From contig NC_043013.1 in NCBI RefSeq assembly GCF_006345805.1, forward strand, positions 35,650,001-35,714,000: a DNA stretch of 64,000 bases, in the 5' to 3' direction. The notes beneath the pieces are model-generated. The model saw only the letters and a program-made list of their open reading frames with translations, was not told the DNA's origin and did not search any database. The translations under genes and the position numbers were made by a program. The DNA is from Octopus sinensis. Its lineage: Eukaryota. Position 1 is the first letter of the stretch; each line of letters begins with the position of its first letter. Below, one piece after another: positions 1,170-55,364 of the stretch.

Positions 1170-1530
1170 AGAGCAAGCACATAAATGTGAAACAAGGTGG
1201 AAAAAACGAGAACTCAAATACCAGAGGTAGAGTAATATGCTTTATTTAAAAGCAGCAGAAATATAACAAAAGCTGTTACTCAGCTCTTTGATTTTTATAA
1301 TAGGATGAATTTATATTGTATTCATTTATTTTGTTTATTTTGTTTATCGCACGCTTAAGACCGTTAATTGAAAGGACCAATGAAACAAATCCATTTTTAA
1401 AGGTGTATCCTTTAACTAGTTTTGATCATATTGTTATTTCTGTTCTATTTTAACAAAACTGTCTGACGAACGGGAACGTGGAACTCTGAGTAACAGCTTT
1501 TGTTATATTTCTGCTGCTTTTAAATAAAGT
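1170..1530. mobile_element. Non-autonomous hammerhead-bearing element with a 44-bp inverted duplication (Penelope-derived, retrozyme-like)
   Basis: 1240-1283 is the exact reverse complement of 1486-1529; contains the hammerhead at 1459-1496 and AATAAA; (TA)n on both flanks. Confidence 0.7.
1459..1496 (+). ncRNA. Minimal type I hammerhead ribozyme motif (A13>G variant)
   Basis: Stem I CTGT/ACAG; core CTGACGA; stem II ACG-GGAA-CGT; GGAA in place of GAAA; near-palindromic stem III ACTCTGAGT; GUA cleavage triplet (after 1492). Confidence 0.7.
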
Positions 1531-1594
1531 ATGTATATATATATATATATACATACATACTCACACACACACATACACACATATACATACATAT

Positions 1595-1808
1595 AGTTAA
1601 TCCAAACAAGAAAGCACAAAAAAACACCACAATGCGAGGACGTGGAACGAATATAGTATTATTGGACGCTCAGGAAAGAAGGAAAGAAGGAGGATTTAAC
1701 GTTTCGAGCGGAGCTCTTCGTCGGAAACATAGGAGAAGGAAAGATCCAGAGAAGGGAAGACAGAGGAAAAAAAAATCGCCAATGGTACACACGCGGTCAC
1801 ATTTTGAA
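1595..1808 (-). mobile_element. Short hammerhead-bearing repeat, CCGACGA family (second copy at about 18715-18918)
   Basis: Shares TATGTTTCCGACGAAGAGCTCCGCTCGAAACGT and downstream TTCCTGAGCG...TTTGGATTAA with the 18.8-kb copy; TA/TG microsatellite flanks. Confidence 0.75.
1694..1728 (-). ncRNA. Minimal type I hammerhead motif (U4>C variant)
   Basis: Minus strand GTTT-CCGACGA-A-GAGC/TCC/GCTC-GAAA-CG-TT-AAAT; stem III palindrome ACGU. Confidence 0.65.
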
Positions 1809-1844
1809 TATATATATATATGTGTATACTAAATACACATATAG

Positions 1845-2240
1845 ATGCAGTTTGAGAGGGGCTGGCAAGCCAGAGGACAGCACCAAGTTCCACTATCTGC
1901 CTTGCCAGGATTTTTACAGATGGAGATGCCTTTCCTAATGCCAACCACTTTACAGAGTGGACTAGATTCTTTTCACATATCATTACCACCAACATCATTG
2001 ACATTTGACATCCATTTTCATGCTAGCATGGGTTGGAAAGCTTGCCAGGAACTGGCAAGACCAGGGACCACACCAGATCCCTTGGCCTGTTTTGGCTTGG
2101 TTTCTACAGCTGGATGCTCTTCCTAATGCTAACAACTTTACAGAGTGTACATGGATGCTTTTTACATGGCACCAGCACCAGTGCTTTTCATGTGGCACCG
2201 ACACGCACACCAATGTCTTTTATGTAGCATTTTGGTTTTA
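1845..2240 (-). mobile_element. Degenerate RTE LINE 3'-UTR fragments
   Basis: Homologous to 54400-54560 (CTGGATGCCCTTCCTAATGCCAACCAC, CATGCTAGCATGGGTTGGA). Confidence 0.75.
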
Positions 2241-2419
2241 GGATATCAATTTTGTAGTGGTGGGTGGGCAGCAAGGCTGTAAAGATACTGCCTCAATAAG
2301 TTTACATTCAGTCACAATACCATTATACCATCATGCCATCAAACTGTTATACCAACATATTCAGTGCCATAATACCATCACACCAACCTATTCTCGTAAC
2401 ATTATACCATTATACTTTC

Positions 2420-3700: not shown

Positions 3701-4087
3701 AATGTTTCTAAACTTTGACCCCCTCCTGAGGAACATAACCCATAGCCTGCAGTCTGTCTGTAAAGCTCAACATGAGGTCAAAATTTAGTGAAATTTTTTC
3801 TATGAATACTTCAGATTTGATGTACAGACTGTCAAATCAAATGGGGTTTTACATAGAGAATAGGTGGCGGGGGATATGAGGGGTGTGGAGGGGAAGGCGG
3901 AGAGTTCTTAGAAGATTTCGGTTTGCCTAACTTTTTATCTTTGTTATTTAAATTAAAATTTTATTTTTCGTATTATTATCTTGTTTTTGGCTTCATTATT
4001 TTTGTTGATCTGTATGCTGTGTGTATATGTATATATAAGTGTGTGAGCGTTTGTGTGTGAGTGTGCGAGCATGCGTGTGTGTGTGTG

Positions 4088-4126
<39 letters not shown>

Positions 4127-4622
4127 TATACATATATACATATACGTATATATATACATGTATATGTCTATACACATATATGTGTATATATATATATATA
4201 TAGGCACACACATATATATATATACATGTATATGTATATACACATATACATACATATAAACATATATAAATATACATATACATGCATATATACAAGTATA
4301 CACGCACACACATACTCACACACACACACTCACACACCTATATATCTATGTATATATATTCATACATATACATATGCATACATACAGGCGCACAGAAACA
4401 TAAATGCACACATACACACATACATTCATATGTATGCACGTACATATATACATTCATATATACAAACATACATGTATACATACATACATGCATAGAGATA
4501 TATATATAGAGAGAGAGGGATGAGGGAGTAAGAGGGATGGAGGGAGAGAGAGGGAAGGGGAGAGAGAGAGGTTTACATATATATGTATATATATATATAT
4601 ATATTATTTATTATATAGAAGG

Positions 4623-4674
4623 AGCTTCTACAGGAACTAGAACTGTTTCATTCAAGAGAAATCTTCAGGAAGCT
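4623..4674 (-). ncRNA. Type I hammerhead ribozyme motif (left arm)
   Basis: Minus strand AGCTTC-CTGAAGA-T-TTC/TCTT/GAA-T-GAAA-CAG/9-nt loop/CTG-TA-GAAGCT. Confidence 0.75.
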
Positions 4675-4806
4675 AGTTAACAAGAATTGTATTGGCATTT
4701 ATACATTTAGGCAGGTTAAAGGGGTGTTGTGGGGGACTTTTTGGGGGTAGGCATACCCCTTTAAACCTGCCTAAATGTATAAATGCCAATACAATTCTTG
4801 TTAACT

Positions 4807-4856
4807 AGCTTCCTGAAGATTTCTCTTGAAGAAACAGTTCTAGTCCTGTAGAAGCT
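4807..4856 (+). ncRNA. Type I hammerhead ribozyme motif (right arm)
   Basis: Stem I AGCTTC/GAAGCT (6 bp); CTGAAGA; short stem II; GAAA; stem III ACAG/CTGT; GUA site after 4850. Confidence 0.8.
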
Positions 4857-5043
4857 CCTTTATAATAAATAATTTTACTCTGCTATGTATTGAGTACCTT
4901 ATTTACTGTGGTTAACCCCGAATCAACCCGGGACCTACATATATATATAATATATATATATATATATGTATATATATGTATATATATATACATATATATA
5001 TATATACATATATATAATATATATATATAATATATATATATAT

Positions 5044-9479: not shown

Positions 9480-11035
9480 TAGATGGAGCAAGCAAATTAA
9501 TGCTGTGGTCATGGAGTGTTACTCCCTGAGCAGCCTGGAAGATGAAAATGGTGCTCAAATTAGGAGTTACTGACAATGTATGTATGATCATTCAAGAGAA
9601 AAGGGATTGTTTTGGCTCACGGAACAGAGACTATGTGATCAAGCTAGAGTAATAAGAAAAAATTGTTGGTTCACAGAAGTAGAGCTCAAAGCTATCAAAA
9701 GACAGGTAGCAACATAGATAACAATGAAAACATGGTTCTTACTAATAAGTGTAATCTTATAGTACAGGAAAGGAGCAGTGGTAGTTTACTTGATGAGAGA
9801 TATATAGATATATAGATGATCTAAAAGAAGATGATAAAACTAATAGCAATATGACAGATGAACAAAAGGCAATCTACGACAGAATAAAGGTAAGACCACA
9901 GGAGAATGATAGCGACATTATTTGCAACCTTAAAAAGGTTGAGTGATGGAAATTGAACCAAGAAACGAAAAACGTCAATAAAATTCTGAAATACTTCAGA
10001 ACAAACAACATCACAGAAACAAATAATTTGATCAAGGCAACAAGAATTGTTGTAGCAGAAAACATGGCTGTTGATGTCAAGTATAAGAAACATAATGGAA
10101 GTGACAAAAGAAAAGATCCATGGTGGAAAAGAAGAATCCAGACAGGGTTAGACATGCTCTTGAAGGAAATCTATGTGCTGGACCGAAAAAAAAAGGGGAG
10201 CTTAAAAGCCCCCCCAAAAAATAAAAAAATAAATGCAGGGCACTGGAAAGGAAGTGTAATATTGAAAGAGAGGCCTGAAAGTAGTAATGGAGGAACTGAA
10301 ACAGTGCCTCATTGCAATGAAAGCAAAGATACGACCAAAGAATGAGGGGTTAACACCAGAATAGGTTAGTCAGAGTAGATCAGAAGAGATTCTATAAAGA
10401 AAGAAATGGAGAGTGTACAGATGAAAAGTTGATACCAGATAACATTGAAAGTCAAAGGTTTTGGAGTGACAACTGGAGCAAAGACAAGGAGCACAAGAAA
10501 GATGCAGAATGGTTGCAAGAACTGAAACAAACAGTAGTCTGTCCAAAACAAGCAGAACTAGTCATTTCAGTTTGGGAAGTGAAGGAAATCAGCAAAAAAA
10601 TGAGCAACAGGAAGGCCCCAGGTCTAGATGGATCAAAAGATTTAGTGAATGTCATGTACGAATAGCTGCGCAACTCAACACCTTGTTAAATGCTGACCAA
10701 ATAACACCAGAGTGGTTGACATTGGGTAGGACAGTGCTGTGCCTGAAAAACATTGAAAAAAGCAATACGGTAGACAATTACAGGCCGATATCCTGTCTGC
10801 CACTTATGTGGAAGTTATTGACTGAAATACTCGCAGAGTCGATGTACAAACATCTGGAAAAAAATGGAGTCCTGCCACATGAGCACAAGGGTTGCAAGTG
10901 CAAGTGCAGAGGTACCGAGGATCAACTCATGATAGACAAAACTGTACTCAGAAATTGCAAGTGGAAGAAAAGTTACTTAGCCATGTCATGGATCAACAAT
11001 CGTAAGGCATATGATATGATCACATTCTTGGATTA
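9480..11035 (+). pseudogene. Degenerate R4/Dong-clade non-LTR retrotransposon ORF (N-terminus and first half of the RT)
   Basis: WSKQINAVVMECY; EQRLCDQARVIRKN; DPWWKRRIQ; [11 protein letters not shown]; [16 protein letters not shown]; [10 protein letters not shown]; [13 protein letters not shown]; multiple stops and frameshifts. Confidence 0.85.
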
Positions 11036-11574
11036 TGGAGTGTATGAACCTATGGCTCTCATGGCTTCTGATCTTAACTGATAGGAAGTATTATCATATA
11101 CATTGTTTTGTCTTGGTATTAAAGATGGGCTACAGCAAATATTCTGTTCACTGCCACAGATTTGCTTGTCAGCTGTTTAACCATAACCAGTTGAGCATGT
11201 CCCTTGTTGGCTGATGATATGTGAATCTCTGATCACAAGTAGAAGGTGTGGGGGAGCATCATAGCAAGATGAGAGGGGTTCTTTGGCATTTGAATAATTC
11301 ACCTTTGGAAACATGGGTGTTTTGTTCATCATCCTTAAACAAGCCTTATTCAGGGACCTTTTGAGTGGGATGGACTACTCAACTATTCAACTGGGCCCCA
11401 CCTGCAAGGTCATGTGCTGTTTATCTTGATATGGGATCACTATGTTGCACACATATGGCTGTGAGGCATGTGCATAGTGTATCCTTATCAGACAGGTAGT
11501 CATGAAGGGTATGTATAGGGCTTCATATATTTGTACCCCAATGTCACTTTGATGGCATGCATTGCTCTCTCACT

Positions 11575-13783: not shown

Positions 13784-13784
13784 G

Positions 13785-14122
13785 CGGCACGGGGGCCAGA
13801 CGAGGCTGGTAACAGCCACGAAAGCACCATCCGATCGTGGCCATTGCCAGCCTCGCCTGGCCCCCGTGCCGGTGGCACGTAAAAAGCACCATCCATCCAT
13901 GGCCGTTTGCCAGCCCCGTCTGGCACCTGTGCGGATGGCACATAAAAAGCACCCACTACACTCACAGAGGGGTTGGCGTTAGGAAGGGCATCCAGCTGTA
14001 GAAACACTGCCAGATCAGACTGGCTGGGCCTGATACAGCCTTCTGGCTTCCCAGACCCCAGTTGAACCGTCCAACCCATGCTAGCATGGAAAGCGGACGC
14101 TAAATGATGATGATGATGATGA
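13785..14122 (+). mobile_element. RTE LINE 3'-UTR fragment with 5' inversion and (GAT)n tail
   Basis: Matches about 54250-54577; 13785-13821 is inverted relative to 13835-13871; inserted in (TA)n. Confidence 0.85.
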
Positions 14123-14671
14123 TATATGTATATATATGCATACATATACATATATACATATATATACACACACACACACACACACATATATATTATAATT
14201 TTGGGTCAGGTTTTATTCACTAGCTTCTTTCAGCTGATTTTGTTAACCATATCAGATAAATAAAGAAAAACAAACAAACAAAAAAACAAACAATAATATT
14301 AATGATAAAGAAAAGAAACAATAGAATGAAAAAATTTTAATAAAGCAAACAATTAAAATTGGAATTAATTATTAATGTTAGTTCATTTTACATTGTATTT
14401 TGTCTTCAGTTTTTGTTTTTTGTTTTTACTTTCGTTCTTATTGTTATTGTAGTTTACTTTCAGCCACTGTGAAATGTGTGTGTGTGTGTGTGTGCATGTA
14501 TGTGCATATACCTAGGTATATGCATGCATGTTTGTATGTGTGCATGTGTGCTTGTGTGTCGGTGTATGTCTCTTTGTGTGTATTCATGTACATATATACA
14601 TGTGTTTATCCACTCATAATGTGTGTATGTTAATGTGCACATATGTACCCATATATATATATACACATACA

Positions 14672-18098: not shown

Positions 18099-18791
18099 AG
18101 TATATACGCGCCGCATGCACCTCGCTCTTGGACCCGACGAGACCTCCCGCTCGTTCCTGGGACCGTCGCTTGTCGTTGGGTTTTCCCACGCCCGTCTCCG
18201 CGGGACCACTCTTCCATCTTCCCCTCAGCTGGAGTCCTTTTTCCTTAACCCCCCCCCTTTTTCGTTACACACACGCGCACACATATACACACATTGCTTA
18301 AATATATACATTACTCTTACACACATTCAATTTACTCGCCATTAATACTACCACGACACTGGACACACACACACACTACTACTCAACACACGCTGGCACG
18401 CTACATACGCCCCCACCCCTTCCCCTCCCTCCCTTCCTCCTTCCTTCTTTTTCTTACTACTGACCATTGTCTGCTATGCCGACCACTGTCTCGCCCTACC
18501 TCACACGCCTACACACAGACGCACACACTAACACATACATATATTTTTTGTTTTTTTATCTCGCCTCACACACACACATACACACACGCACACGCACACA
18601 CTCACACATACACACACATCTGTTGCGTTACCAACCTTGTCTCCACTCTTTTCCCTTTAAAAACCTACTTTGCTCTTGTTATCGTAAACTTCCGCCTTTC
18701 ACCTTGTGTAACTCGTAAACACCAGTCGTTTTTTTTCTCTATCCCTGTTGCCCGCTTTGGGATCTTTCTTTCCTCTCTCTTCCTTCTTTAT

Positions 18792-18826
18792 GTTTCCGAC
18801 GAAGAGCTCCGCTCGAAACGTCATAC
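18792..18826 (+). ncRNA. Minimal type I hammerhead motif (U4>C variant)
   Basis: GTTT-CCGACGA-A-GAGC/TCC/GCTC-GAAA-CG-TC-ATAC; GUC site after 18822. Confidence 0.65.
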
Positions 18827-18913
18827 CTCCCTGCTTCCATTTCCTGAGCGCCTATTAATAATAATACTGTAATTGTTCCATTGTTGTTGTTTTTTTGTTT
18901 TCCCGTTTGGATT

Positions 18914-18954
<41 letters not shown>

Positions 18955-20550
18955 GCATATACATGTACATATATATATATTTAAACTTGGTCATTCCAAG
19001 AAATAAATATATATATATAAAAGCAACACAACAAACAGTGATGCTTGATGCTCATGCATGTTTAAACTTACAAATACATAAAACACACGTATGTTCCTAA
19101 ATATATATGCACGCATACTCAAAACTGCATAAATACAGACACACATATACATACCCGCATGCTCCTATACATACACTTGCTCATATTCCTAAATACACAA
19201 GCACACACACATATTCGGTTTGTTGACCTTGTACCTCCTCCCAATCAATCTCCACCGATCCCCCGCTCCGCAAAGATAAAAAAACAGAGCACTCCCTCTG
19301 ATTTCTCCTTGACTCTATGACTCCATGACTCTATGATTCTATGGCTCTTTGACTCTATGTTGCATCACTTCTTTCTTATGTGTCACTTCACCGATATTCT
19401 TGCATTAATTTTACTAGTGAACTTCTGGGAAGAGAGAAAGATAGATAGAGAGAGAGAGGGAGGAGGGATGGAGGGAGAGGGAAAGAGAGAGCAAAAGAGA
19501 TAGAGAGAAATTAGCATAGGAAAGGTGGGAGGACATGCTATGTAGGAGGAGCTCTGTTTTGATTCCCTTTCGCTGTATGGGTAAGGGGTGTGGGCTGGGA
19601 GCAATGGGGCAGTTCTTATTTCAACATTTCAAGCATAAAAATATTAAACACAAATATAGCAATCAAAATCAATAAATTATGTTTTTTTAAAACTTGAAAT
19701 TTTAACAGAAACATTTGTTATTTTTTAAACCTTTTTTTTTTAAATTTTTTTTTTCCTCGTTATTATTGTAATTTTTTTTATGTAGGTGGGGGTGTCATAC
19801 TTATTGATTTTTTTTAATTTCCTTAATTTTTTTTTTTCGTTTTTAATAATGCAAAGTGTGTTCATTATAAGAAAATTAACTACTTAATAATACAATAATT
19901 CTTTTGTAGTAGTGGTAGAGAGGGAACAATTAGGATGAGACTAAAATGGGATGCTGGCAGGCTGAGATAACTTACAGTATTTAGATTTTCCTCTGAAGGG
20001 TCCTTGCTTAAATATTGTGATAGAGTTCTGAGCAACTCATATCTTTCCTTCTTCTCTCACCCACCCCATCTCTCTCTCTCTCTCTCTCTCTCTTTCCTTA
20101 GACTTGTCTCGGGAGGGTCCTTCCTCTTTATTCACCCACCCCTTTTCCATCTCTTTCTTTTTTACTTTTGGATCATTGAAATCAGTTTCAATATTTCAGT
20201 TCTGTCATTCATATTCCTTCTGTTTTCAGGGTAAAGTGGCCTTGAGCAGCTTGACTCAAAAAAACCAATGTGTTCAGAGAGACATATGGTTGTGTTGAGG
20301 AAACATTAAAACAAGTAAATAAATATGCCCACTGAAATAATAATTATTTTGAATTTTTGCCGCAAAGGCAACTTCGGGGAGGGGGGATGAATCGATTACA
20401 TCAACCCCAGTGTTTAACTGGTACTTATTTCATTGACCCTGAAAGGATGAAAGGCAAGGTTAACCTCAGCGGAATTTGAACTCAGAACAGGTGAAAGGCA
20501 GGTGAATAATAACAACAACAACAAAAATAATAGTGATAATAATAATAATG

Positions 20551-21869: not shown

Positions 21870-23173
21870 CAGGTTGTGGGGAAAAAAATTGTCATCTAAA
21901 TTACGCAAAAATGGAAATAACACTGACATCTCATTTAAACAGATATATTTACCAAAATTACATAAAAATATCTTGAAATACAAAAGAGCAAATTTATTTA
22001 ATAAAATCGCCATTGGCTTCAACCACGGCCTCCAGACGACTTCAGAATCTCCTACAACTCTTCTGGACAGTCTCCTTGTTTAAGTTGGTGAATGCTGCTA
22101 TAATCCTTGCCTTCAGTTCAACTTTGGTGTTACAAGGAGTTTTGTTGGTCTCTCACTCAACTGTGCCCCACACATAATAATCAAGAAGGTAACAGTGTGG
22201 AGAGTTATGTGGCCAGATGTTAGGGATGATTTGGTTGCCAAAATTATCTGACAGCCATGACTGTGTTCTCCTGCTTGTGTATGGTGCAGAGTCCTGTTGC
22301 CAGATGTAGCGTGTTCCATCAGCCATCCTCTTGACCCAGGGTAGCATTACTTCATCCAGGTCATTGATGTAGGCCTTTGTTCTGAGTCTGAGGCCAAGTG
22401 GGAAGATGAATAGAGGCATAACGTTGCCATCACTAGTGATCACTCCAAACACATGATGTTGACTGGATGTTTGATTTTTATCACACTCAGTACATATTTT
22501 GGGGACATGGCAAGCCAACAATTGTTCTGTGTGCCCAGCATCTGAACTCCTGTCAGAAATTCTTTTTGTGTGAGAAAAACCAAAGCATGTTTGGTTGGAG
22601 GGGATTCTTGAGTTTGTCCTAAAACTTCATAGCATGGTCTTTCCTCTTATCCTGGATGGCTTGGGATAAAAACTGGCCCTTTCTCAACTTCTATGATGAA
22701 TACCAAATGTCTTCATGCACTACCTGCCTGATAAGAAACTCAGACACTCCCTTGTCCCTGGTGATGGCTCTGATTGACCTGGAGGGATTATTGTCAATCA
22801 TGGCTTGGATCTCACCAACAAATTCAGGAGTTGTTTTCTTATCAAAACAATCAGAGTGAGTTTTCCAAGCTGCTGTACCTTCGTAATTACCATTAGAGTC
22901 ATCCAATGCTTTCCAAATTCTCTGAACTGTCCTCAGATTGACACCCAAATACTCTGAAATATTTGTATTGGAGCTTCCGGCATGAATGCCAAGCAGTACT
23001 GCATGTCATTTCTAAATTTTTGGCAGAGTGAATTGCATCATGGTGCTATTTTTCTTATAGACGGTGCCCAATTGACCCTACTATACTGAGTAGACAACAA
23101 AATCAAAAAACAAATAACACGCATGTGCGAAATTAAAAATATAGAATTGCGACAATTTACTCCTCGCACCCTG
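21870..23173 (-). mobile_element. Tc1/mariner DD37D (maT-like) transposon, near full length, degenerate
   Basis: Imperfect TIRs CAGG(G/T)TG...AAATTGTC with TA on both sides; transposase pieces VFGVITSDG, WQQDSAP, WPHNSPHCYLLDYYVWG; N-terminal GVNLRTVQRI and PSRSIRAI. Confidence 0.85.
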
Positions 23174-24443
23174 TATATGTATATCTAAAACATTTACATG
23201 AATATCCTGCATACCTATGTGCATACACTGTACTTGATGCACCTCAGCAGCTCGTATATATTTTATTAATTAAATTATCTTGGAGACATTCTGTTCTTCT
23301 AGGCATACCATTTTTTTAGGCATTCCAACAACAATAAACATACATACAGAGAGGAGAAAAATTCATGGAATTAGAAATTCATTTCATTTTTTTTTTTTAA
23401 TTTATTCGTACTATTCTTATGCTAATTCTATTTTTTTGCTCATTTACATATGCGTTGTATATTCTCAGATATGTGTACATGTATGTATGTGCGTGGATGC
23501 ATGATTGTGTGCATGTATGTAAGTATGTTTGTACGTAGGTATGTTTTTATTTATGTATGTATGTAATTATGTGTGTATATTTGTATTTATGTATGTATGT
23601 ATGTTTGTATGTAGGTATGAATGCTTGTATGCATGAATGTTTGTATGTATTTTTGTATGTATTTTTGTATGTATGTTTGTATGTATGTATGTATGAATGT
23701 ATGCATGTGAGTTTTTGCGTATGTTTGCATGTACATTCTCTTCTTGATTGGAAGACTTTTTTTGAGTTGATTTTGTCTGGCAGCATTCTTGTGCAAAGAT
23801 TCTAAAGAAAAGATAACAAATTTTAAAAGTAGGTGTTTTCTTGTGAGTCTTTTTTCATGGGGGGTGGGGGTGCAGGCAGTCGTGTTTGCAATAACAACCT
23901 TTAAATTTTAAAAAGGTTTGTCAGATTCCTCTTGGAATCTTACATGATGTCTAACATGGTTATCAATGATACCCCATGAAATACATGGCCACAGCATTTC
24001 TTCAAGAATCCAAATTCGATGATAATGCATAACTGGATTGGATTGCCTGTGTTCAGTCCACTGCAAGACCAAGGCCTCAGCATGTTCTCTTCACCGACCA
24101 TGGTTTGTTGTGGAGGCCATGAAGTTGAGCTTGAGATTATTACTGGTTTTGTGAGTGTGTAGTGGTTTACGTAGCTAAATAGTTGAATGATCTCCCTTGC
24201 ATGAAAGATTATAGAGTAACCTCCCTTTTCTAAGTTTCTTGAAGCATCTATGTCATGAGACGTGATTCTTAATTATTCAAGAAGCTTACCATTTCTCTTG
24301 GAAGTTTCTAGAATGTCTAACGCTCCATTAATAAAAACAGATTGTCAACCCTGCACTTCGCTTCTTATTTGTTCTTAACCTATATATTACTTTATTTACA
24401 TTATTTACATTTGACGGATATTTGTCCTCATCTTGTTTGTTGT

Positions 24444-24491
24444 TAACACAACATTTCAGCTGATATACTCTCCAGCCTTCATCAGGTGTCA
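24444..24491 (-). ncRNA. Minimal type I hammerhead motif
   Basis: TGACAC-CTGATGA-A-GGCTG/GAGAGTATAT/CAGCT-GAAA-TG-TT-GTGTTA; 6-bp stem I. Confidence 0.75.
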
Positions 24492-24548
24492 TGGGGAAAT
24501 TTCGAACCTGGGTTCTCATTCCTAAGGTACTACTTGATGTTATTATTA

Positions 24549-24619
<71 letters not shown>

Positions 24620-24621
<2 letters not shown>

Positions 24622-24694
24622 AGTCACTGCCTGGAATCAAACTTGGAATCTTGGTGTTAGTAGCCCGTGCTCTTAACCACTACGCCATATGCCC
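24620..24694 (-). mobile_element. tRNA-derived Pol III head (SINE-type)
   Basis: A-box TGGCGTAGTGG and B-box GTTTGATTCC at tRNA-like spacing; no acceptor-stem closure. Confidence 0.8.
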
Positions 24695-25131
24695 ATGTTA
24701 ACAACAAACAAGATGATGAGGACAAATATCCATCAAATGTAATTAATGTAAATAATGTACATAATTCCTCATCTCTGAAATATAGACCTGTCCATATATT
24801 ACTGTTCATATTTTATCGTATGTCCCTTGTCCTGAAATCTTTCATCACACACCTGTGACTCCTTCAGTGACCCTTCCAATCCACTATATCCTCCTACTTT
24901 GCTTAGTCCATTCACATAAATACCTTGTACATTTGATGTATCTACTGGATTCTAAAACTACTGGGTACATTTTCAGGGTTTCTTTAATCCTTATTTTAAT
25001 ACTTTTAATTGCAAACTATTGCTATTTTACTGTTTACCATCTCTTTGTATATATCTGCATTGAAAAAGCTTGTAATTTTTAAATAGAATTAGTATAATCC
25101 CCGTGACATGCTATGAAATCCTCAAATATAT

Positions 25132-26160: not shown

Positions 26161-26394
26161 AGATGAAATGCTTAACAGTATTTTGTCCATCTTCACGTTT
26201 TGAGTACAAATGCTGCCAAGCTTGACTTCGCCTCTCATCCTTTTGGGGTCGCTAAATTAAGTACCAGTGCACACTAGGATCGATGTAATCAAGCAGTCTC
26301 CATCCTCAACATTTCATGCCTTGTGCCTTTTGTAGAAAGGATTATTTAACATTTTTAAAAATCTCTGAGCAAGAAATATACAGTAACAATACCG

Positions 26395-26677
26395 AACAGT
26401 AAAGTTTATTTGCCAACATAACGTGGCAGTCCTATACAGGGACGATGTCACTAGCTGCTGACTGTCTCACACTGAAGATGGGTAACCACTCAGAAACCTG
26501 GGTCTATGAGTATCATGTAAGGCTAGAGATGGGTGTGATGACCCCCCTTATATATACTATATGGGCACAAGTTGTGCGATGATAGCCAACTGGAAAAGAT
26601 GTTTTCCTGGGGCTAAAAGACAGTAACATAGTCCTTATATAGGACTGCCACATTGTTGGCAAATAAACTTTACTATT
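26395..26677 (+). mobile_element. About 280-bp hammerhead-bearing element with about 50-60-bp imperfect terminal inverted repeats
   Basis: 26395-26453 is inverted relative to 26621-26677; AATAAA in the right arm; hammerhead at 26466-26510. Confidence 0.75.
26466..26510 (+). ncRNA. Type I hammerhead ribozyme motif with fully canonical core
   Basis: CTCACA-CTGAAGA-TGGGT/AACC/ACTCA-GAAA-CCTGGG-TC-TATGAG; GUC site after 26504. Confidence 0.85.
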
Positions 26678-27094
26678 ATTTAACGATGTATAATTTATGT
26701 TCCATACAATAGATTAACGATGACAACCTCAATTTATTTTACTAAATTCTTTATTGATTGAAACAGTGACAGAGCATTTTAACAGAATATACTGACTTCG
26801 ATTCAGTTTCTGCTGATGAAACATTAGAAGTGTTAGATCTAAATTTTTTTCATTAATAGAACCTAATTTGTTTTCATCCATGGATTGAAAAAGCAACAAA
26901 CTCTATCGTGCTAATATTTTTGTTGTTGTTTTATTTTTTGATTAGTCATCAGGTAATCACAGATTCGGAAGACTTTTATGATTAAATGTATTGCAGTAAT
27001 GACCATCACATATTTAATAATTGTTTTCATTTTTTTTAGAAGGTTGGTGCAGTGCTGGATCAACCATTAAGCAAAATAAACACGTGCTTCACCC

Positions 27095-27422: not shown

Positions 27423-27995
27423 AGGCGGCAAGCTGACAGAAACGTTAGTATGCCCGGCGAAATGCATAGCGGTATTTCGTCTGTCTTTACATTCTGAGTT
27501 CAAATTCCGCCAAGGTCGACTTTGCCTCTCATCTTCTGGGGTCGATAAATTAAGTACTGGTTGCGTACTAGGGTTGATCTAATCGACTGGTCCCTACCCC
27601 CAAAATTTCGGGCCTTGTGCCTAGAGTAGAAAAGAATCGTTAGCACTCTGGATGAAATGCTTAGGGGTATTTTGTCTACCACTACATTTTGAGTTCGATA
27701 AATTAAGTACTAGTTGCGTACTGGGGTCGATCTAGTCAACTGGCCCCCTCCCCCAAAATTTCGGGCCTTGTGCCTAGAGTAGAAAAGAATTGTTAGCACT
27801 CTGGGTGAAATGCTCAGTGGTATTTCATCTGCCACTACATTCTGAGTTTGAATTCCGCTGAGCTCAACTTTGCCTGTCATTCCTTTCATGGTTGATAAAT
27901 TAAGTGCTAGGGACACACTGGGGTTGATGAAATCAACTTATCCACTCTCCACAAATTTCAGGCCTTGTACTTTTATTAGAAAGGATAATTGAATA
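27423..27995 (+). mobile_element. Head-to-tail array of three SINE family B units
   Basis: Repeated GTTAGCAC...GATAAATTAAGT...CCCCAAAATTTCGGGCCTTGTGCCTAGAGTAGAAAAGAAT. Confidence 0.85.
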
Positions 27996-34218: not shown

Positions 34219-34382
34219 TGCAGCGTGGAAGGTGTTTATAAGCCATTAAGAAACACACAAAAGCCGTTCGATTCACTTCAACATTTAAGTTTAATTTGTC
34301 AAAATATTTTCGGCGCTAAAATCCGCGACCTGTTCACTGACAAAGTCCGTGCTGCATCTAAGAAAGTAACAGTTAGTTCGTC
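34215..34382 (-). mobile_element. About 170-bp hammerhead-bearing element between (TA)n tracts
   Basis: CpG-containing non-repetitive island flanked by TA/TG microsatellites; hammerhead at 34295-34344. Confidence 0.7.
34295..34344 (-). ncRNA. Minimal type I hammerhead, G3-C8 covariant
   Basis: TTTGTCA-GTGAACA-GG(T)CGC/GGATTTTA/GCGCC-GAAA-ATAT-TT-TGACAAA; perfect 7-bp stem I; stem III palindrome AAUAUU. Confidence 0.8.
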
Positions 34383-36714: not shown

Positions 36715-36810
36715 GCTTGACACGTCTTCACAAGTGCAGCAAATCACCACAAATCCCGATCCTTTATACATGTATATATGTGTATATGTACATATATACA
36801 TATGTGTATA

Positions 36811-36851
<41 letters not shown>

Positions 36852-36900
36852 ATATATATATATATATATTATATATATATATAATATATATATATATATA

Positions 36901-37047
36901 GGAGTGGCTGTGTGGTAACTAGCTTGCTAACCAACCACATGGTTCCGGGTTCAGTCTCACTGTGTGGCATCTTGGGCAAGTGTCTTCTGCTATAGCCCCG
37001 GGCCGACCAATGCCTTGTGAGTGGATTTGGTAGATGGAAACTGAAAG
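36901..37047 (+). mobile_element. SINE family A 5' half, exact duplicate of 37153-37299
   Basis: Identical, including private variants (GTAACT, TCTCAC). Confidence 0.9.
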
Positions 37048-37093
37048 AAGCCCGTCATATATATATATATATATATATGTGTATATATATATG

Positions 37094-37152
<59 letters not shown>

Positions 37153-37154
<2 letters not shown>

Positions 37155-37540
37155 AGTGGCTGTGTGGTAACTAGCTTGCTAACCAACCACATGGTTCCGG
37201 GTTCAGTCTCACTGTGTGGCATCTTGGGCAAGTGTCTTCTGCTATAGCCCCGGGCCGACCAATGCCTTGTGAGTGGATTTGGTAGATGGAAACTGAAAGA
37301 AGCCCGTCATATATATGTATATATATATATATGCATGTCTGTGTTTGTCCCCCTACCATTGCTTGACAACCGATGCTCATGTGTTTATGTCCCCGTTACT
37401 TAGCGGTTCGGCAAAAGAGACCGATAGAATAATAAGTACTGGGCTTACAAAAGAATAAGTCCTGGGGTCGAGTTGCTCGATTAAAGGTGGTGCTCCAGCA
37501 TGGCCGCAGTCAAATGACTGAAACAAGTAAAAGAGTAAAA
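37153..37540 (+). mobile_element. SINE family A, full-length
   Basis: Head, internal (TA)n, body and GACTGAAACAAGTAAAAGAG tail. Confidence 0.9.
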
Positions 37541-39480: not shown

Positions 39481-40696
39481 CACAGACTCACACCTACTCA
39501 TACACTTATATATATAATAAATGAATAAACTCAGTCATTGAGACTATATAATTGCATAGTTCAAACAGAAATCTCTTAACTTTTAATAACCAGTACTGAG
39601 CCCTGAATAAACTGAATAAAATTTATTACCGATACCAAATGCTTTCAAAATTACAAATCTGATGGGGGGAAAAAAATAAATATGATAATAATATCATGAA
39701 ACAGAATAATTTATGCATTAACAACACAGATAACTTTAGACTTATTACATAATATAAAAGCAGTAACCTAGAAAATAGATTTTTTTTTTAATATAAAAGA
39801 TTGGAAATGTCAAATCAAGACTTTTTTTTGGCTTTAAAAAGTTCTTTTTTTTATTTTATTATTTTACGATTTGGATTTTTTTTAGATGAGAAACGTGAGA
39901 ATGTTTTCACAAATCAAAATTGTGTAGAAAAAAATTTTAAAAAGAAAAATTGTATATTCTTTTTTTAAAGCATAAACTGAAATTTTAACTCAAATTGGAA
40001 TTCAATAAGAAATTAAAATTCAAATTGAAGTTTTTAAAACTAAAAAAACAGACATTTTGTTTTTGTTGTTGTTACTGCTGCTGCTGCTGTTGTTGTCGTT
40101 GTTGTTGTTCTTTTAAATAGTTTATTAGTTTGAAATTGATGTGATATTTTCATTAACTACTTGAAATCAGAAGCAAGCTGGAAAAAGCAATGAAATGAGT
40201 TAGCTAGACAGTTAAGTCTTCTTGAACAGAACATTATCAATGCAAATTGGAATCAAGTACTAAAAGAACGTTATCAAGTGTTATATACTACTAAACAGTC
40301 CTATGTTTGAAACACCTTTCAAATATGCAGATATAACACCTCATGAAAAAGTACGAATTTACAGGCTTTGTTTATTAGCTGTAAAAACTGTAAAACTAAA
40401 GCAATATATTTATTCTAGTTCTCTAATATTTGTGTCAATCCACCAGCCTGAAACTATATTACTGAGAATATTTACCCAGATACAGCTGTGTAGTTACGAA
40501 TTTTGCTTTGCATCTACAAGGTTTCAGGTTCATTCTCACTTCTGAGCACTTTGAGCAACTTTTTTTTTATTATAGTCCTGGGCCAGCCAATTCCTTGTGG
40601 GTGAATTTTGTGGGCAAAAATTATGTAGAAACACATCATACATATGTATGTGTGCGTGTGTGCGTGTGTGTGTGTGTCGGTGTATGTGTGTGTGTG

Positions 40697-43980: not shown

Positions 43981-44084
43981 TAGCTGATAACTGACTTACA
44001 AAGGGTCTGTGGAGAGCTTAGTCTATAGAGTAAATCCTTAGTGTGGTTTCTCATGGAAAACCTGGGCCACAAGGATTATTTCAT

Positions 44085-44330
44085 CATCATCATCATCGTC
44101 GTTTAGCGTCCGTTTTCCATGCTAGCATGGGTTGGACGGTTCTACTGGGGTCTGTGAAGCCAGAAGGCTTCATCAGGCCCAGTCAAATCTGGCAGTGTTT
44201 CTACGGCTGGATGCCCTTCCTAACGCCAACCACTCTGTGAGTGTAGTGGGTGCTTTTTACGTGCCACCCGCACAGGTGCCAGACAGAGCTGGCAAACGGC
44301 CACGAACGGATGGTGCTTTTTATGTGCCGT
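44085..44330 (-). mobile_element. RTE LINE 3'-UTR fragment
   Basis: TTTAGCGTCCGTTTTCCATGCTAGCATGGG matches the LINE terminus. Confidence 0.85.
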
Positions 44331-49277: not shown

Positions 49278-49289
49278 TATATATATGTT

Positions 49290-49540
49290 TTATCATTATC
49301 ATCATCATCATTTAGCGTCCACTTTTCATGCTAGCATGGGTTGGACGGTTCAACTGGGGTCTAGGAAGCCAGAAGGCTGCACCAGGCCCAGTCTGGTCTG
49401 GCAATGTTTCTACAGCTGGATGCCCTTCCTAATGCCAACCACTCTGTGAGTGTAGTGGGTGCTTTTTACGTGCCAACCACACAGGTGTCAGATGGGGCTG
49501 GCAAACGTCCACGGTTGGATGGTGCTTTTTACGTGCCACC

Positions 49541-49545
<5 letters not shown>
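49290..49545 (-). mobile_element. RTE LINE 3'-UTR fragment
   Basis: Same terminal sequence and (CAT)n tail. Confidence 0.85.
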
Positions 49546-49578: not shown

Positions 49579-49890
49579 CACATAAATTGGAATAATTACT
49601 TTGAAGCATTGTGTAGAATATATTGTATAAAGGATCGTGGGTAAGGCCAGAACAATGCAAAATAAATGCAAAGCAAATCGCAAGAAAACAAATATATGAA
49701 TTAATGTAGACTTACCTTGCATTCAGTATTTTGGGGTTTTGACACCATTTTCAAGAAATTAACGTATGTTGCTGATGTGTTTGTGTGTGAGTGTATGTAG
49801 TGAACATGCATGGAAAGGTGTTGTTACAGCAACCTTCTAGCTTCCTGTTGATATTTGGTTTCCTTTGGTGATTGAGGATGGCCTCAGAGA

Positions 49891-50403: not shown

Positions 50404-50453
50404 AAAGCAACACTTTTCCATTCATGCACATGCACATTGGCAACATTTGTTAA

Positions 50454-50491
50454 TTTCTTGAAAATGGGGTCATAACCCCGAAATATTGAAT
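50454..50491 (+). ncRNA. Minimal hammerhead, U3-A8 covariant, in the Penelope pLTR
   Basis: TTTC-TTGAAAA-T-GGGGT/CATA/ACCCC-GAAA-TA-TT-GAAT; stem III palindrome AUAU; decayed mirror copy at 49721-49759 (-). Confidence 0.7.
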
Positions 50492-50761
50492 GCAAGGTAA
50501 GTCTGTATTAATTAATATATTTATTTTCTTTTGATTTACTTTGCATTTATTTTACATTGCTCTTGCCTAACTGTCCACTCAAGGAAACACATAGCAAATG
50601 ATCTACAAGCACTCAAGCAAACTGAATCCTCACGTTGTTCCATTTGCCGAAAGGTTTGCAAGGCAAAAGAGATACATTCCTGTCTATAGAATATGATTAA
50701 TACTTTATTTTACTGAACCCTTATTTGTGGTTCATGACAAGGAAATCCATCATATATATGC

Positions 50762-50940
50762 ATAGATCGTTAGCCACTACACACATTTTTTTTGCTCTCC
50801 TTGTTTTTTCTGTGTCCCTCTCTGTAGAAGAGCATAGGCTCGAAACGTAAAAGACTTTTTCTATTCCTGAGTGTTATACTAGTACATCTGTTTGTTTTGT
50901 ACACCACCTGTCTTTGTCTTTTGTTTTTTTCATAAACTCT

Positions 50941-50943
<3 letters not shown>
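50762..50943 (+). mobile_element. Short hammerhead-like element (CTGTAGA family) with (TA)n tail
   Basis: Architecture like the CCGACGA family, including TTCCTGAG downstream of the motif. Confidence 0.6.
50818..50853 (+). ncRNA. Hammerhead-like motif, A6>U variant
   Basis: CTCT-CTGTAGA-A-GAGC/ATAG/GCTC-GAAA-CG-TA-AAAG. Confidence 0.55.
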
Positions 50944-50983
<40 letters not shown>

Positions 50984-50986: not shown

Positions 50987-52881
50987 GCCAATGTCCTGCG
51001 TCGTGAGGATGAAAGACTTGAGGTATTTCGTGTTGCAAGACAGTGTGTGAGAGAGAATCGTGACGTGGTAGGAGAGAAATGTGTTCGCAAGGAGGACGGT
51101 TCACTTGCACTTAATGAGGGTGCAAAGAGAGAGACTTGGAGACGCCACTATGATAGGTTGCTGAATGAAGAAAATGAATGGGATAAAGAGAGTCTGCCGA
51201 ATGTCGACCCAACAGAGGGACCAGCAATCCGAGTTAACAGTTCCTTAGTAGATAAGGCAATTAGAAGCATGAAAACAGGAAAGCCCCAGGCCCATCAGGA
51301 ATTACTGCAGAGATGCTCAAAATATCTGGTGGTGTCGGCTATAGCTTAGTCACCCGTATAGTTAACCAGGTGATACACGAGGGGGTCATACCCAATGACT
51401 GGTGTAGCAGCATAATAGTCAACTGCTACAAAGGTAAAGGCGACGCCCTAGAGACAAATAACTACAGGGGCATCAAGCTGCTGGATCAGGTAATGAAGGT
51501 TACGGAGAGGGTTGTAGCCGAACTAATTAGAGAGAGAGTTACCTTAGATGATATGCAGTTTGGGTTCGTGCCAGGGAAAAGTACTACTGATGCTATATTC
51601 CTGGTAAGACAGCTGCAGGAGAAATACCTAGCCAAAGATAAGCCCTTGTACCTGGCTTTTGTTGACTTGGAGAAAGCCTTTGACAGGGTCCCCCGGTCCC
51701 TTATCTGGTGGTCAATGAGGAACTAGGGATAGAAGAATGGTTGGTGAGAGCTGTGCAAGCCATGTACAGAGACGCTATTAGTAAGGTGAGGGTGGGCAAC
51801 GAGTACAGTGAAGAATTCCGGGTAGAGGTTGGGGTCCACCAAGGTTCAGTCCTCAGTCCCCTCCTATTTATCATAGTCCTCCAGGCAATAACGGAGGAAT
51901 TCAAGACAGGTTGCCCCTGGGAGCTCCTCTATGCTGATGACCTTGCTCTAATTGCTGAGTCACTATCAGAACTGGAGGAGAAGTTCCAGGTGTGGAAACA
52001 AGGATTAGAATCGAAGGGCCTTAGAATCAACCTAGCCAAAACCAAAGTTCTAATAAGTAGGAAGGTAGATCAATCACAAACGCCTTCAGGTAGATGGCCC
52101 TGCTCGATCTGTAAAAAGGTGTAGGTAGAAACTCTATAAGATGCACCAAGTGTAAGCTATGGACACATAAGAGGTGCAGCAATGTCAAAGGAAGGCTAAC
52201 TAGGAAAATAGTTTTTGTCTGTGGCAAATGCTCAGGAGCAATAAACACTGGAAATATGCAGAGACCAACTTCTGCCACGTTCCAGGGAGACAAACTAGAA
52301 GTAGTTGATAGCTTCCGCTACCTAGGAGACCAAGTCAGTAGCGGGGGTGGGTGTGCTGAAAGTGTAACTGCTAGAGTAAGAATAGCCTGGGCAAAGTTTA
52401 GAGAGCTCTTACCCCTGCTGGTGACAAAAGGCCTCTCGCTCAGAGTAAAAGGCAGACTGTATGATGCATGTGTACGTACAGCCATGCTACATGGTAGTGA
52501 AACATGGGCCGTGACTGCTGAGGATATGCGTAAGCTCGCAAGAAATGAAGCCAGTATGCTCCGATGGATGTGTAATGTCAGTGTTCATATTCGTCAGAGT
52601 GTAAGTTCCTTGAGAGAAAAGCTGAACCTAAGAAGCGTCAGTTGTGGCGTGCAAGAGAGACGGCTGCGCTGGTATGGTCATGTGACAAGAAAGGCTGAAG
52701 ATAGTTGTGTGCAAAAGTGCTACACCCTAGCAGTGGAGGGAACCTGTGGAAGAGGTAGACCCAGGAAACCTGGGACGAGGTGGTGAAGCACGACCTTCGA
52801 ACTTTAGGTCTCACTAAGGAAATGTCTAGAGACCGAGACCTATGGAAGTATGCTGTGCATGAGAAGACCCGGCAAGACTAG
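50984..52881 (+). pseudogene. RTE reverse transcriptase ORF (4 single-base frameshifts, no internal stops) with PHD-type finger insertion
   Basis: NYRGIKLL; QFGFVPGKSTTDAIF; FVDLEKAFDRV; GVHQGSVLSPLLF; LLYADDLAL; FRYLG; AMLHGSETW; RLRWYGHV; GRGRPRK. Confidence 0.95.
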
Positions 52882-54574
52882 TCAGGCCATAACCCGTGGC
52901 CCCGACCTGGGACGTAGTCAGTCCTGTGCATACCTTCCTTCTTGTGACACTTATGAAGACCTGTTGAGGCAAGTGAAAATCAAATCAAATCAAAACAAAT
53001 CAAAATAGATGAACATCAGTGGAATTGTATTCTTTGTGGTACCAGTGCCGGTGGCACACAAGAAAACCACCCAAACGTGGCCGTAACCAGTACCGCATCG
53101 ACTGGCCTCCGTGCTGTGGGCACAACAAACACCATCCGATCGTGGCCGTTCGCCAGCCTCATCTGGCACCTGTGCCGGTGGCACATAAAGACACCATCCG
53201 AAGACCCGGCGACGTAGTCAGTCCACCTGTGCATACCTTCCCTCTTATGACACTTGTGAAGACCTGTTGAGGCAAGTGTGTGACACTTGTGAAGACCTGT
53301 TGAGGCAAGTGAAAATCAAACCAAATCAAAATAGATGAATATCAATGGAATTTGTATCTTTGTGGTTCCAGTACCGGTGGCACACAAGAAAACCATCCGA
53401 AGTGGCCGTAGCTGGTACCGCATCGACTGGCCTCCGTGCTGTGGGCACAACAAACACCATCTGATCGTGGCCGTTCGCCAGCCTCACCTGGCACCTGTGT
53501 CGGTGGCACATAAAAACACCATCCAAAGACCCGGCGACGTAGTCAGTCCACCTGTGCATACCTTCCCTCTTATGACACTTGTGAAGACCTGTTGAGGCAG
53601 AGGCAAGTGTGTGACACTTGTGAAGACCTGTTGAGGCAGAGGCAAGTGTGTGACACTTGTGGAGACCTGTTGAGGCAAGTGTGTGACACGCGTGACACTT
53701 GTGAAGACCTGTTGAGGCAAGTGAAAAATCAAACCAAATCAAAATAGATGAACATCAATGGAATTTGTATCTTTGTGGTTCCAGTACCGGTGGCACACAA
53801 GAAAACCATCCGATCGTGGCCGTTCGCCAGCCACATCTGGCACCTGTGTCGGTGGCACATAAAGACACCATCCGAAGACCCGGCGACGTAGACAGTCCAC
53901 CTGTGCATACCTTCCTTCTTGTGACACTTGTGAAGACCTGTTGAGGCAAGTGACACTTGTGAAGACCTGTTGAGGCAAGTGAAAATCAAATCAAATCAAA
54001 ACAAATCAAAATAGATGAGCATAAATGGAATTTGTATCTTTGTGGTACCAGTGCCGGTGGCACACAAGAAAATCATCCGAACGTGGCCGTAGCCAGTACC
54101 GCATAGACTGGCCTCCGTGCTTTGGGGACGTAACAAACACCATCCGATCGTGGCCGTCCGCCAGCCTCATCTGGCACCTGTGTCGGTGGCACATAAAAAC
54201 ACCATCCGAGCGTGGCCGTCTGCCAGCCTCGTCTGGCACCTGCCAGCCTCATCTGGCACCTGTGTCGGTGGCACATAAAAACACCATCCGAGCGTGGCCG
54301 TCTGCCAGCCTCGTCTGGCACCTGTGTCGGTGGCACATAAAAACACCATCCGAGCGTGGCCGTTCGCCAGCCTCGTCTGGCACCTGTGTCGGTGGCACAT
54401 AAAATCACCCACTACACTCTCGGAGTGGTTGGCGTTAGGAAGGGCATCCAGCTGTAGAAACACTGCCAGATCTGACTGGCCTGGTGCAGCCTTCGGGCTC
54501 CCCAGACCCCAGTTGAACCGTCCAACCCATGCTAGCATGGAAAACGGACGCTAAATGATGATGATGATGATGAT

Positions 54575-54577
<3 letters not shown>
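50984..54577 (+). mobile_element. 5'-truncated RTE-clade LINE with long tandem-repetitive 3' UTR and (GAT)n tail, inserted in (TA)n
   Basis: RT coding region 50984-52881, UTR 52882-54555, GAT tail, TA tracts on both sides. Confidence 0.95.
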
Positions 54578-54613
<36 letters not shown>

Positions 54614-55364
54614 CCATACACACATATACACACATACATACATACATACATACATACATACATACATACATACATACATACATACATACATACATACATA
54701 CATACATACATACATACATTAACAGATATATATGTGCAATATCTGCACTCGTTGCTGTGTGGTAAGAAGTTTGATTTCAAACCACATGGTTCCAGGTTCT
54801 GTCCCACTGTGCAGTACCTTGGGCAAGCGTCTTCTTCTACAGCATCAGGCTAACCAAAGCCTTGTGAGTGGATTTGGTAGCTGGAAACTAAAAGAAGCCC
54901 ACCACATATATATATGTGTGTGTGTGTGTATGTATACATATATATGTATTATTATTACAAATTTGGGATTTTACCAATAGGATCACAACTTCAATTTCAG
55001 GACAACCTTATTTACTGGAGTACACATAGAAAATTATATCCAAAACATTAATCTAATAATACAATCTTTTTAAAGCCTACTATAACATACAATAAGAATA
55101 AAGTACATTAAAATTAATTATAAATTATTTCAATATATTTTTTAAAAATATATATACCTTACCTGTTGTTAGTCTGTGAAGAAGGAAGATAATATTAATC
55201 AATGCTACACGTTTCAGCAGTGATGGTTTGTTTTACCAGGCTATACATAATACATAAATCCACCAGAGCATCCTCAGGCTATTTTCTTCTTTTTATTATT
55301 ATTATTAATGGATCCAAATTAATCCTACAAATTCTAAGATATCTTCATTAAAAATGTAGATATA

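Follow-up and report, generated by a model that had tools for sequence, protein, structure and literature searches.

Minimal type I hammerhead motifs in short non-coding repeats of an Octopus sinensis genome window: probable relics of Penelope-type retrotransposition

Minimal type I hammerhead ribozymes (HHRs) are known as a regular component of Penelope-like elements (PLEs), and all PLEs examined carry them in their terminal repeats (Cervera & de la Pena 2014, PMC4209133). Metazoan genomes contain thousands of copies each, which are mostly solo and belong to many sequence families, and some copies lie on opposite strands 100-700 bp apart (PMC4209133). The hallmarks of these ribozymes are an unpaired base after A9, a G10.1-C11.1 pair, a palindrome at 15.2-16.2 and a U3-A8 variant of the core, while their cleavage is weak and dimer-dependent (PMC4209133). 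PLE insertions show strong 5' truncation, often with an adjacent inverted 5'-truncated copy, and a tail of 30-40 bp (Craig et al. 2021, PMC8557442); they are biased towards (TA)n and keep the hammerhead close to the 3' end (PMC8557442). One coral was reported to have over 6000 type I motifs, which fall into 16 families (Cervera & de la Pena 2020, PMC7229834), and for the retrozymes of metazoans that are not of the long-terminal-repeat type (non-LTR retrozymes) an origin from PLE terminal repeats, as non-autonomous derivatives, was proposed (PMC7229834; Li, Clavereau & Pollet 2026 preprint, 10.64898/2026.07.22.740005). Regarding octopuses, PLEs are present in Octopus vulgaris, with 31 families recently active (PMC13282606), and no report of hammerheads in octopus was found in the literature searched, where the sole joint mention concerns Naiad PLEs, which are without hammerheads. 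Here we analyse a stretch of 64,000 nucleotides from Octopus sinensis (assembly GCF_006345805.1, contig NC_043013.1, positions 35,650,001 to 35,714,000 of the forward strand; hereafter the window, numbered from its first letter), for which an earlier note had proposed about 10 minimal hammerhead motifs from at least 7 families of short elements. Our analysis reveals hammerhead motifs well above the chance level in short non-coding repeats, which are probably relics of PLE-type retrotransposition.

The window was scanned with a descriptor of the canonical HHR, which requires a stem I with a minimum of 4 bp (5 bp if there is one mismatch), the core CUGANGA, a stem II with a minimum of 3 bp and no more than one unpaired base at either of its ends, GAAA, a stem III formed as a hairpin or as a loop-less palindrome not exceeding 10 nt, and then U followed by a non-G. 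Four matches were obtained at three independent loci, namely 4623-4674(-) together with 4807-4856(+), 24444-24491(-) and 26466-26510(+), with C3 at 4668(-), 4813(+), 24485(-) and 26472(+), which amounts to one canonical motif per roughly 16 kb. The expected number is far lower, with a mean of 0.03 in 300 global dinucleotide shuffles and of 0.06 in 300 local shuffles, and there is no match in the reversed sequence. When 720 decoy cores of the same composition but permuted order were run on the real sequence, the mean was 0.047 and the true core was the single best. Relaxing the stem or loop limits added no match, with the null still below 0.25. The proposition that the motif is more frequent than in dinucleotide-shuffled sequence is therefore borne out. 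With exactly one core mismatch, 2 loci were observed against 1.6 expected, which is no enrichment, and hence the near-miss sites cannot stand on motif statistics alone. Three further hits are false positives: the helices of 39886(+) and 60381(-) are A/T runs, and 7344(+) has no GAAA.

All eleven sites of the earlier note were then read against this descriptor. Their coordinates are correct to a few bases, and matches of the covariance model described below start or end at 24444, 1692, 18790, 50816, 50452 and 26466. Exact CUGANGA occurs at 1459(+), 4623(-), 4807(+), 24444(-), 26466(+) and 55204(-); the full CUGANGA...GAAA core that had been claimed throughout is present at 4623(-), 4807(+), 24444(-) and 26466(+), whereas the other sites deviate from it and 55204(-) was rejected for having no acceptable GAAA-stem III-UH. 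The loop-less palindromic stem III was read correctly (ACGU, AUGU, ACCUGGGU, AAUAUU, AUAU and ACUCUGAGU), except at 4807/4623, where it is a 4-bp hairpin. As to the count of about 10 motifs in at least 7 families, roughly 6 sites, belonging to 3 families, have good support, while 2-3 are suggestive and 2-3 lie at the chance level.

The best-supported site is the canonical minimal type I hammerhead at 24444..24491 (-), which reads GACAC-CUGAUGA-A-GGCUGG..UCAGCU-GAAA-UG-UU-GUGUU and was found by both the descriptor and the covariance model; it has the extra A after A9, a G10.1-U11.1 pair and the palindrome AUGU. The canonical-core hammerhead at 4807..4856 (+) occupies the right arm of a palindrome and combines a stem III hairpin (ACAG-9nt-CUGU) with a weak stem II (UUC/GAA), and its mirror copy, likewise matched by the descriptor, lies in the left arm at 4623..4674 (-). 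The minimum free energy (MFE) fold of 4807(+) is a three-way junction, but with a z-score of +0.2. The descriptor also matched a hammerhead-like motif at 26466..26510 (+), with the canonical core, one mismatch in stem I and U10.1-A11.1. This is the least secure canonical match, because the 5' parts around it are inverted in a foldback-like manner and the covariance model gives it only 9.5 bits, and the motif is possibly fortuitous.

Independent evidence came from a covariance model, R1, which was trained on five minimal HHRs that the canonical descriptor found on the low-GC animal contigs treated below, which are unrelated to the window; these HHRs represent five further families, none of them selected through the ACGU block discussed below. 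On 109 kb of high-GC contigs the same descriptor found nothing. R1 covers 45 positions with stems I and II and without stem III, and the window was searched with filters off. Since it is unable to score a long stem III or altered positions 3 and 8, R1 is uninformative for 4807/4623, 1452 and 34295. Its top four matches in the window, all at sites named in the earlier note, are 24444-24491 (-) with 29.9 bits (E=2.8e-6), 1692-1730 (-) with 19.7 bits (E=0.003), 50816-50855 (+) with 17.5 bits (E=0.013) and 18790-18828 (+) with 16.3 bits (E=0.03), followed by 50452-50493 (+) with 12.6 bits (E=0.38) and 26466-26506 (+) with 9.5 bits (E=3). The control comprised 86 kb, made up of an O. vulgaris locus (L121, 21 kb) and bacterial contigs in which the 18-nt ACGU block happens to occur, and its maximum was 14.5 bits, against four matches of at least 16 bits in the window. 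Because this control, with the block-bearing bacterial sequences included, does not exceed 14.5 bits, the scores of the octopus ACGU copies are owed to the upstream core and stem I too and not to the block only.

Three of the R1 matches belong to one repeat family of about 220-260 nt, which is 68% identical overall. The copies at 1692..1730 (-) and 18790..18828 (+) share the core CCGACGA (U4C), the former with an extra A after A9, stem II GAGC/GCUC and stem III ACGU, and they lie in hosts at about 1590-1808 and 18698-18955. The third copy, at 50816..50855 (+) in a host at about 50765-50945, is diverged, with the core CUGUAGA (A6U) and a stem II loop AUAG. The block GAAGAGC-N3/4-GCTCGAAACGT is the sole invariant stretch of the family, with 3 matches against 0.00 expected. 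Read as a hammerhead, it gives C[C/U]G[A/U]NGA, an unpaired A, GAGC/GCUC with G10.1-C11.1, GAAA, ACGU, H17 and a stem I of 3-4 bp; the extra nucleotide between 9 and 10.1, the G10.1-C11.1 pair and the palindromic 15.2-16.2 are present in all three copies. Stem II is invariant among them, and one stem I pair appears as G-U, G-C and C-G. None of the copies has an inverted partner, and their 5' ends are similar.

Two other pairings were seen in this family. In 1692(-) and 18790(+) an AUGUUUC 5' of the core can pair with GAAACGU over 7 bp (1692-1734 (-) and 18786-18828 (+)); this pairing is the predicted MFE fold of 1692(-) and would mask the GAAA box, and 50816(+) is without AUGUUUC. In addition, a UCCUGAG box that is complementary to the 3' strand of stem II is invariant in the three copies, 45-55 nt downstream (about 1645-1655 (-), 18866-18876 (+) and 50870-50880 (+)).

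The ACGU block is not confined to the octopus. A scan of public metagenome contigs with the 18-nt block matched at least 120 contigs, and at least 79 of these represent copies of a single repeat that resides in animal host DNA of low GC, where TRIM-NHL, G protein-coupled receptor and bHLH genes are among its neighbours; viral contigs scanned for the block gave no match. The repeat reads ..GCUC[U/C]GACGA-A-GAGC-UAAC-GCUC-GAAACGUC-AGC.., and among these at least 79 copies position 4 is C in 28 and U in 27, according to subfamily. In view of this subfamily-specific state, CCGANGA is a recurrent natural variant of the motif class and does not merely reflect decay. Many of the so-called metagenome contigs behind the loci retrieved (L001-L120; e.g. 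Ga0126336/37/42/43, OMLO01, OFEQ01) are in fact animal host DNA. The repeat is there in high copy number, and its head-to-head inverted copies are frequent and truncated within the ribozyme. In two contigs (L092 and L118) the block had seemed closest to the octopus version; they were set aside, having no other likeness to the window.

The remaining sites depart from the canonical core. At 34295..34344 (-) the core reads GUGAACA, so that the pair at positions 3 and 8 is swapped to G3...C8; stem I has 7 bp, stem II 5 bp with a bulge, and stem III is AAUAUU. Its MFE fold contains stems I and II, and its host is a unit of about 180 nt flanked by microsatellites. The descriptor was rerun for each of the 16 possible base combinations at positions 3 and 8. 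When stem I had to be perfect over at least 6 bp, the window gave C-G three times, G-C once at 34337(-) and A.A once at 39886(+), the last being a poly-A/T artefact; with at least 7 bp only 34337(-) was left, against a summed null of about 0.1. The site 34295-34344(-) is thus suggestive and may be a naturally occurring hammerhead with G3-C8 in place of the C3-G8 tertiary pair, although as a single copy it is statistically insecure. It resembles the double mutant C3G/G8C in having G at 3 and C at 8 in an otherwise well-formed motif, and this mutant recovers part of the cleavage activity, as related in PMC11167929, which cites Martick & Scott 2006. The mutant is engineered, however, and no natural G3-C8 hammerhead was found in the literature searched. 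A natural U3-A8 variant is described from Schistosoma PLEs (PMC4209133), and a U3...A8 core (UUGAAAA) is found at 50452..50493 (+) with a stem I of only 3 bp and stem III AUAU; on motif statistics this site is at chance level, and in the inverted copy of its unit (49641-49793(-)) stem II and GAAA have decayed without compensation. At 1452..1504 (+), where stem I has 11 bp and stem II is capped by GGAA, the GAAA of the core is replaced by GGAA (A13G), and on motif statistics alone this site too is at chance level.

The hosts of the motifs are non-coding units of 130-380 nt, and several of them have an inverted arrangement. The palindrome centred at 4741 has arms of about 125 nt (4603-4725 and 4755-4880) with 3' ends outward and each motif near the outer 3' end. 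The unit 1237-1532, holding 1452(+), has 47-nt inverted ends of 98% identity (1237-1283 and 1486-1532), and the unit 24385-24763, holding 24444(-), has inverted ends of 64-68 nt and 90% identity (24385-24448 and 24696-24763). The 50452-type unit at 50419-50571 has its inverted partner 630 nt off at 49641-49793. In each of the four families with inverted partners, it is the 3' end that the two copies have in common, and this end faces outward. Around the 26466 motif, inverted termini of about 85 nt (26367-26452 and 26622-26702) are formed by the 5' parts, as in foldback elements or miniature inverted-repeat transposable elements (MITEs), with the motif in the centre. With end points placed by eye, five of the 10 element 3' ends are no more than 6 nt away from (TA) runs of at least five repeats, against 6% of random positions; such a bias is not peculiar to PLEs. 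About half of the elements were found to have the inverted duplications and (TA)n flanks that the earlier note had called frequent. No clear target-site duplications were seen at the units. The tandem direct arrays detected by TRF (2404-2905, 27534-27848, 36807-37332, 52943-54209 and others) contain no hammerhead site, and the 21-kb O. vulgaris locus L121 has neither a hammerhead nor a copy of any unit.

The unit 24385-24763 deserves a closer description. On the minus strand it consists of the inverted 68-nt copy of the 3' end (24763 to 24696), a tRNA-like head (24694 to about 24620), an (AAT)n run, the hammerhead, and the 68-nt 3' end (24448 to 24385). In the head, at about 24620-24694 (-), an A box TGGCGTAGTGG and a B box GTTTGATTCC were read by eye; neither ARAGORN, which found no tRNA in the window, nor Rfam calls it, and it has no second copy in the window. 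The inverted partner 24696-24763 matches only from stem I position 1.2 onward, which places its 5' end within 1 nt of the predicted cleavage site; the inverted copy 1237-1283 begins 7 nt upstream of its own predicted site. As a single case, the 5' end of 24696-24763 could be the footprint of cleavage in vivo followed by full-length reverse transcription of the 3' fragment onto the opposite DNA strand. Likewise the tRNA-like head fused upstream of the 24444 hammerhead could represent a short interspersed element (SINE) dependent on PLEs. The more far-reaching reading made up of these three propositions, namely a natural G3-C8 hammerhead at 34295(-), a cleavage footprint at 24696-24763 and a PLE-dependent SINE, is one to which we give little weight.

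Compared with the minimal type I HHRs of PLEs (PMC4209133; Lunse, Weinberg & Breaker 2016, as cited in PMC6765202), the window motifs show the same core CUGANGA...GAAA...UH and an open stem I of 3-6 bp. They also share the unpaired nucleotide between A9 and 10.1, the G10.1-C11.1 pair and a loop-less palindromic stem III that implies action as a dimer. Like the PLE motifs, they fall into many unrelated families per genome, mostly solo, with some opposite-strand pairs 100-700 bp apart and a U3-A8 variant. Unlike them, the window has no PLE open reading frame (ORF) or recognisable PLE-type terminal repeat (pseudo-LTR, pLTR), and octopus is not among the species named for PLE hammerheads in the literature searched. 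Further differences are that one family has C at position 4, that one candidate has G3-C8, and that 4807/4623 have a real hairpin as stem III. With the metazoan non-LTR retrozymes the window shares short (150-450 bp), low-GC, non-coding units bearing type I hammerheads; retrozymes, however, are defined by tandem direct repeats and circular RNAs (circRNAs), with mostly canonical hammerheads, whereas the window units form no tandem arrays. The Schistosoma elements Sm-alpha and Sj-alpha (Ferbeyre 1998; Laha 2000; in PMC6765202) are, in that summary, built of a promoter-like head followed by a hammerhead, as in 24385-24763. They differ in that only one window unit has such a head, for which tRNA tools make no call, and the Schistosoma hammerheads are summarised there as canonical and active.

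Taking these together, we consider it fairly likely that the window holds relics of PLE-type retrotransposition carrying minimal type I hammerheads. The units would be 5'-truncated 3' ends of PLEs (pLTR pieces) or short non-autonomous derivatives of them, with the hammerhead near the 3' part. Going by the published motif class, two hammerheads in transcripts of a master copy might pair through the loop-less palindromic stem III into an active dimer and be cut after H17. The PLE reverse transcriptase with its GIY-YIG endonuclease would insert the copies, preferably at (TA)n, and priming on both DNA strands would often leave a head-to-head inverted partner with 3' ends outward. This link to PLEs, like dimer cleavage and the mode of insertion, we infer from the literature. 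The dispersed copies in the window, which are solo or inverted and in several cases bear core substitutions, are probably for the most part catalytically silent fossils. The PLE interpretation offered by the earlier note accordingly stands in part: above-chance motifs, PLE-type hallmarks and short non-coding units, several with an inverted partner and (TA)n, agree with it, and so does the reported occurrence of recently active PLE families in O. vulgaris, but no reverse transcriptase/GIY-YIG gene accompanies them.

A number of observations weigh against such an origin. Rfam gave no hammerhead match at the gathering score in the whole window, and none at E<=10 in 300-nt and 2-kb sub-regions containing 4623/4807, 24444 and 26466; the gathering and E-value scans of the window and two sub-regions returned only microsatellite look-alikes of miRNA families. 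Folding energies are unexceptional (z from +0.5 to -1.9) and have no discriminating power. Canonical matches at 4807/4623 and 26466 are without G10.1-C11.1, and several copies carry changes at positions conserved in hammerheads (U4C, A6U, A13G). In the ACGU family one pair is altered on both sides, but with three copies only, 176 of 500 shuffles do as well. That the ACGU copies have similar 5' ends is more in keeping with a discrete short element than with a long PLE truncated at random from its 5' side. The GIY-(C..C)-YIG pattern was not found in six frames of the window and the 121 fetched loci, nor was any reverse transcriptase/GIY-YIG coding remnant of a PLE; absence of a PLE ORF is expected if the copies are short 3' ends. 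According to published work, PLE hammerheads cleave weakly in vitro, and insertion in vitro does not depend on this cleavage (PMC11167929). Moreover, (TA)n tails and microsatellite flanks are also common in SINEs that depend on long interspersed elements (LINEs).

This last point leads to the rival that survives best, although we still regard it as unlikely, namely that the units are hammerhead-bearing SINEs moved by LINEs, like Sm-alpha and Sj-alpha in Schistosoma. An RNA polymerase III promoter of the tRNA-like type would then give a short hammerhead transcript, which a LINE (RTE, CR1 or Dong-R4) would copy by way of a microsatellite tail. The A- and B-box-like head upstream of the hammerhead in 24385-24763 speaks in its favour, as do the many units that end in (TA)n or (AAT)n-like runs, the richness of the window in SINEs together with RTE and other LINE fragments, and the fact that SINEs and LINEs are the largest orders of transposable elements in O. 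vulgaris (PMC13282606). Yet the head, uncalled by ARAGORN and Rfam and present only once in the window, may be a SINE in its own right, inserted between the two arms. In addition, no 3' tail common to the units and the window LINE fragments was found, and the 3'-outward inverted partners in four families are a described trait of PLEs and not of SINEs.

The inverted ends lend themselves to another explanation, in which 1237-1532, 26367-26702, 4603-4880 and 24385-24763 are MITE or foldback DNA elements with terminal inverted repeats and the motifs in them are fortuitous. It is suggested by inverted-repeat ends of 47-125 nt with 85-98% identity, by Tc1/mariner remnants in the window, by the poor R1 score of 26466 and by the core mismatch of 1452 at chance level. 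However, no target-site duplication was seen, and what is inverted in three of the four units is the 3' end, which lies downstream of the hammerhead. Moreover, the hammerhead at 24444 is strong (E=2.8e-6), and the overall motif enrichment rules out chance for the set. We therefore regard this explanation as quite improbable. Still harder to sustain is the view of the units as active non-LTR retrozymes that are cut by their own hammerheads and turned into small circRNAs in large numbers. Units of 130-380 nt with low GC and type I hammerheads do resemble metazoan retrozymes (PMC7229834), and the earlier note had named retrozymes in this connection; but not one hammerhead lies in tandem direct repeats, all copies being solo or inverted, which is at odds with the definition of retrozymes, and the hammerheads are minimal with several core substitutions, not canonical ones with loop 1-loop 2 contacts. 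Finally, that all motifs are chance matches in AT-rich, repeat-rich sequence, to which the silence of Rfam, the chance rate of one-mismatch motifs, the clear false positives 39886(+), 60381(-) and 7344(+) and the unremarkable folding z-scores might point, is refuted for the set by 4 canonical matches against 0.03-0.06, the first rank of the true core above 720 decoys, and R1 E-values down to 2.8e-6 with four matches of at least 16 bits against none in the 86-kb control, while chance is possible for 26466, 1452, 50452 and 55204 singly.

Concerning the remaining content, the window is AT-rich (GC about 36%) with dense (TA)n and (TG)n microsatellites and SINE-like repeats. An RTE-type LINE fragment occupies 50990-52790 (+), with its reverse transcriptase spread across three frames; the ORFs at 51313-52786 were assigned to it by motifs and O. 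vulgaris homology. In a protein search the closest named relatives of the ORF 52256-52783 are from O. vulgaris (93% identity, with 38% of the query covered) and O. bimaculoides (67-71%). Among selected window ORFs, Pfam found RVT_1 in two and no match in one. Directly after the fragment follows a tandem array at 52943-54209 (325 nt x 3.8), whose units are similar to the SINE copies at 13821-14192, 44079-44328, 49278-49541 and 58818-59118. A second LINE reverse transcriptase fragment lies at 10509-11081 (+), three Tc1/mariner transposase remnants lie at 22156-22626 (-), 55535-55906 (+) and 61838-62514 (-), and a minisatellite with units of 24/120 nt lies at 2404-2905. A public protein record of 194 aa (P0122), entitled 'RNA-directed DNA polymerase, partial [Escherichia coli]' and encoded on a contig of 586 nt, shares 81% identity with the RTE reverse transcriptase at 51313-51723 and is probably a contamination or a mislabelling.

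The whole picture has already been published for other animals; what is described here extends it to an octopus genome and by itself opens no new question. Cephalopod genomes consist of about two-thirds repeats, with hundreds of 'unclassified SINE' families, and with the help of a hammerhead model some of them could be recognised as PLE-dependent elements. In addition, the swap in the core pair and the inverted copy whose start coincides with the predicted cleavage site could bear on whether PLE hammerheads cut in vivo.

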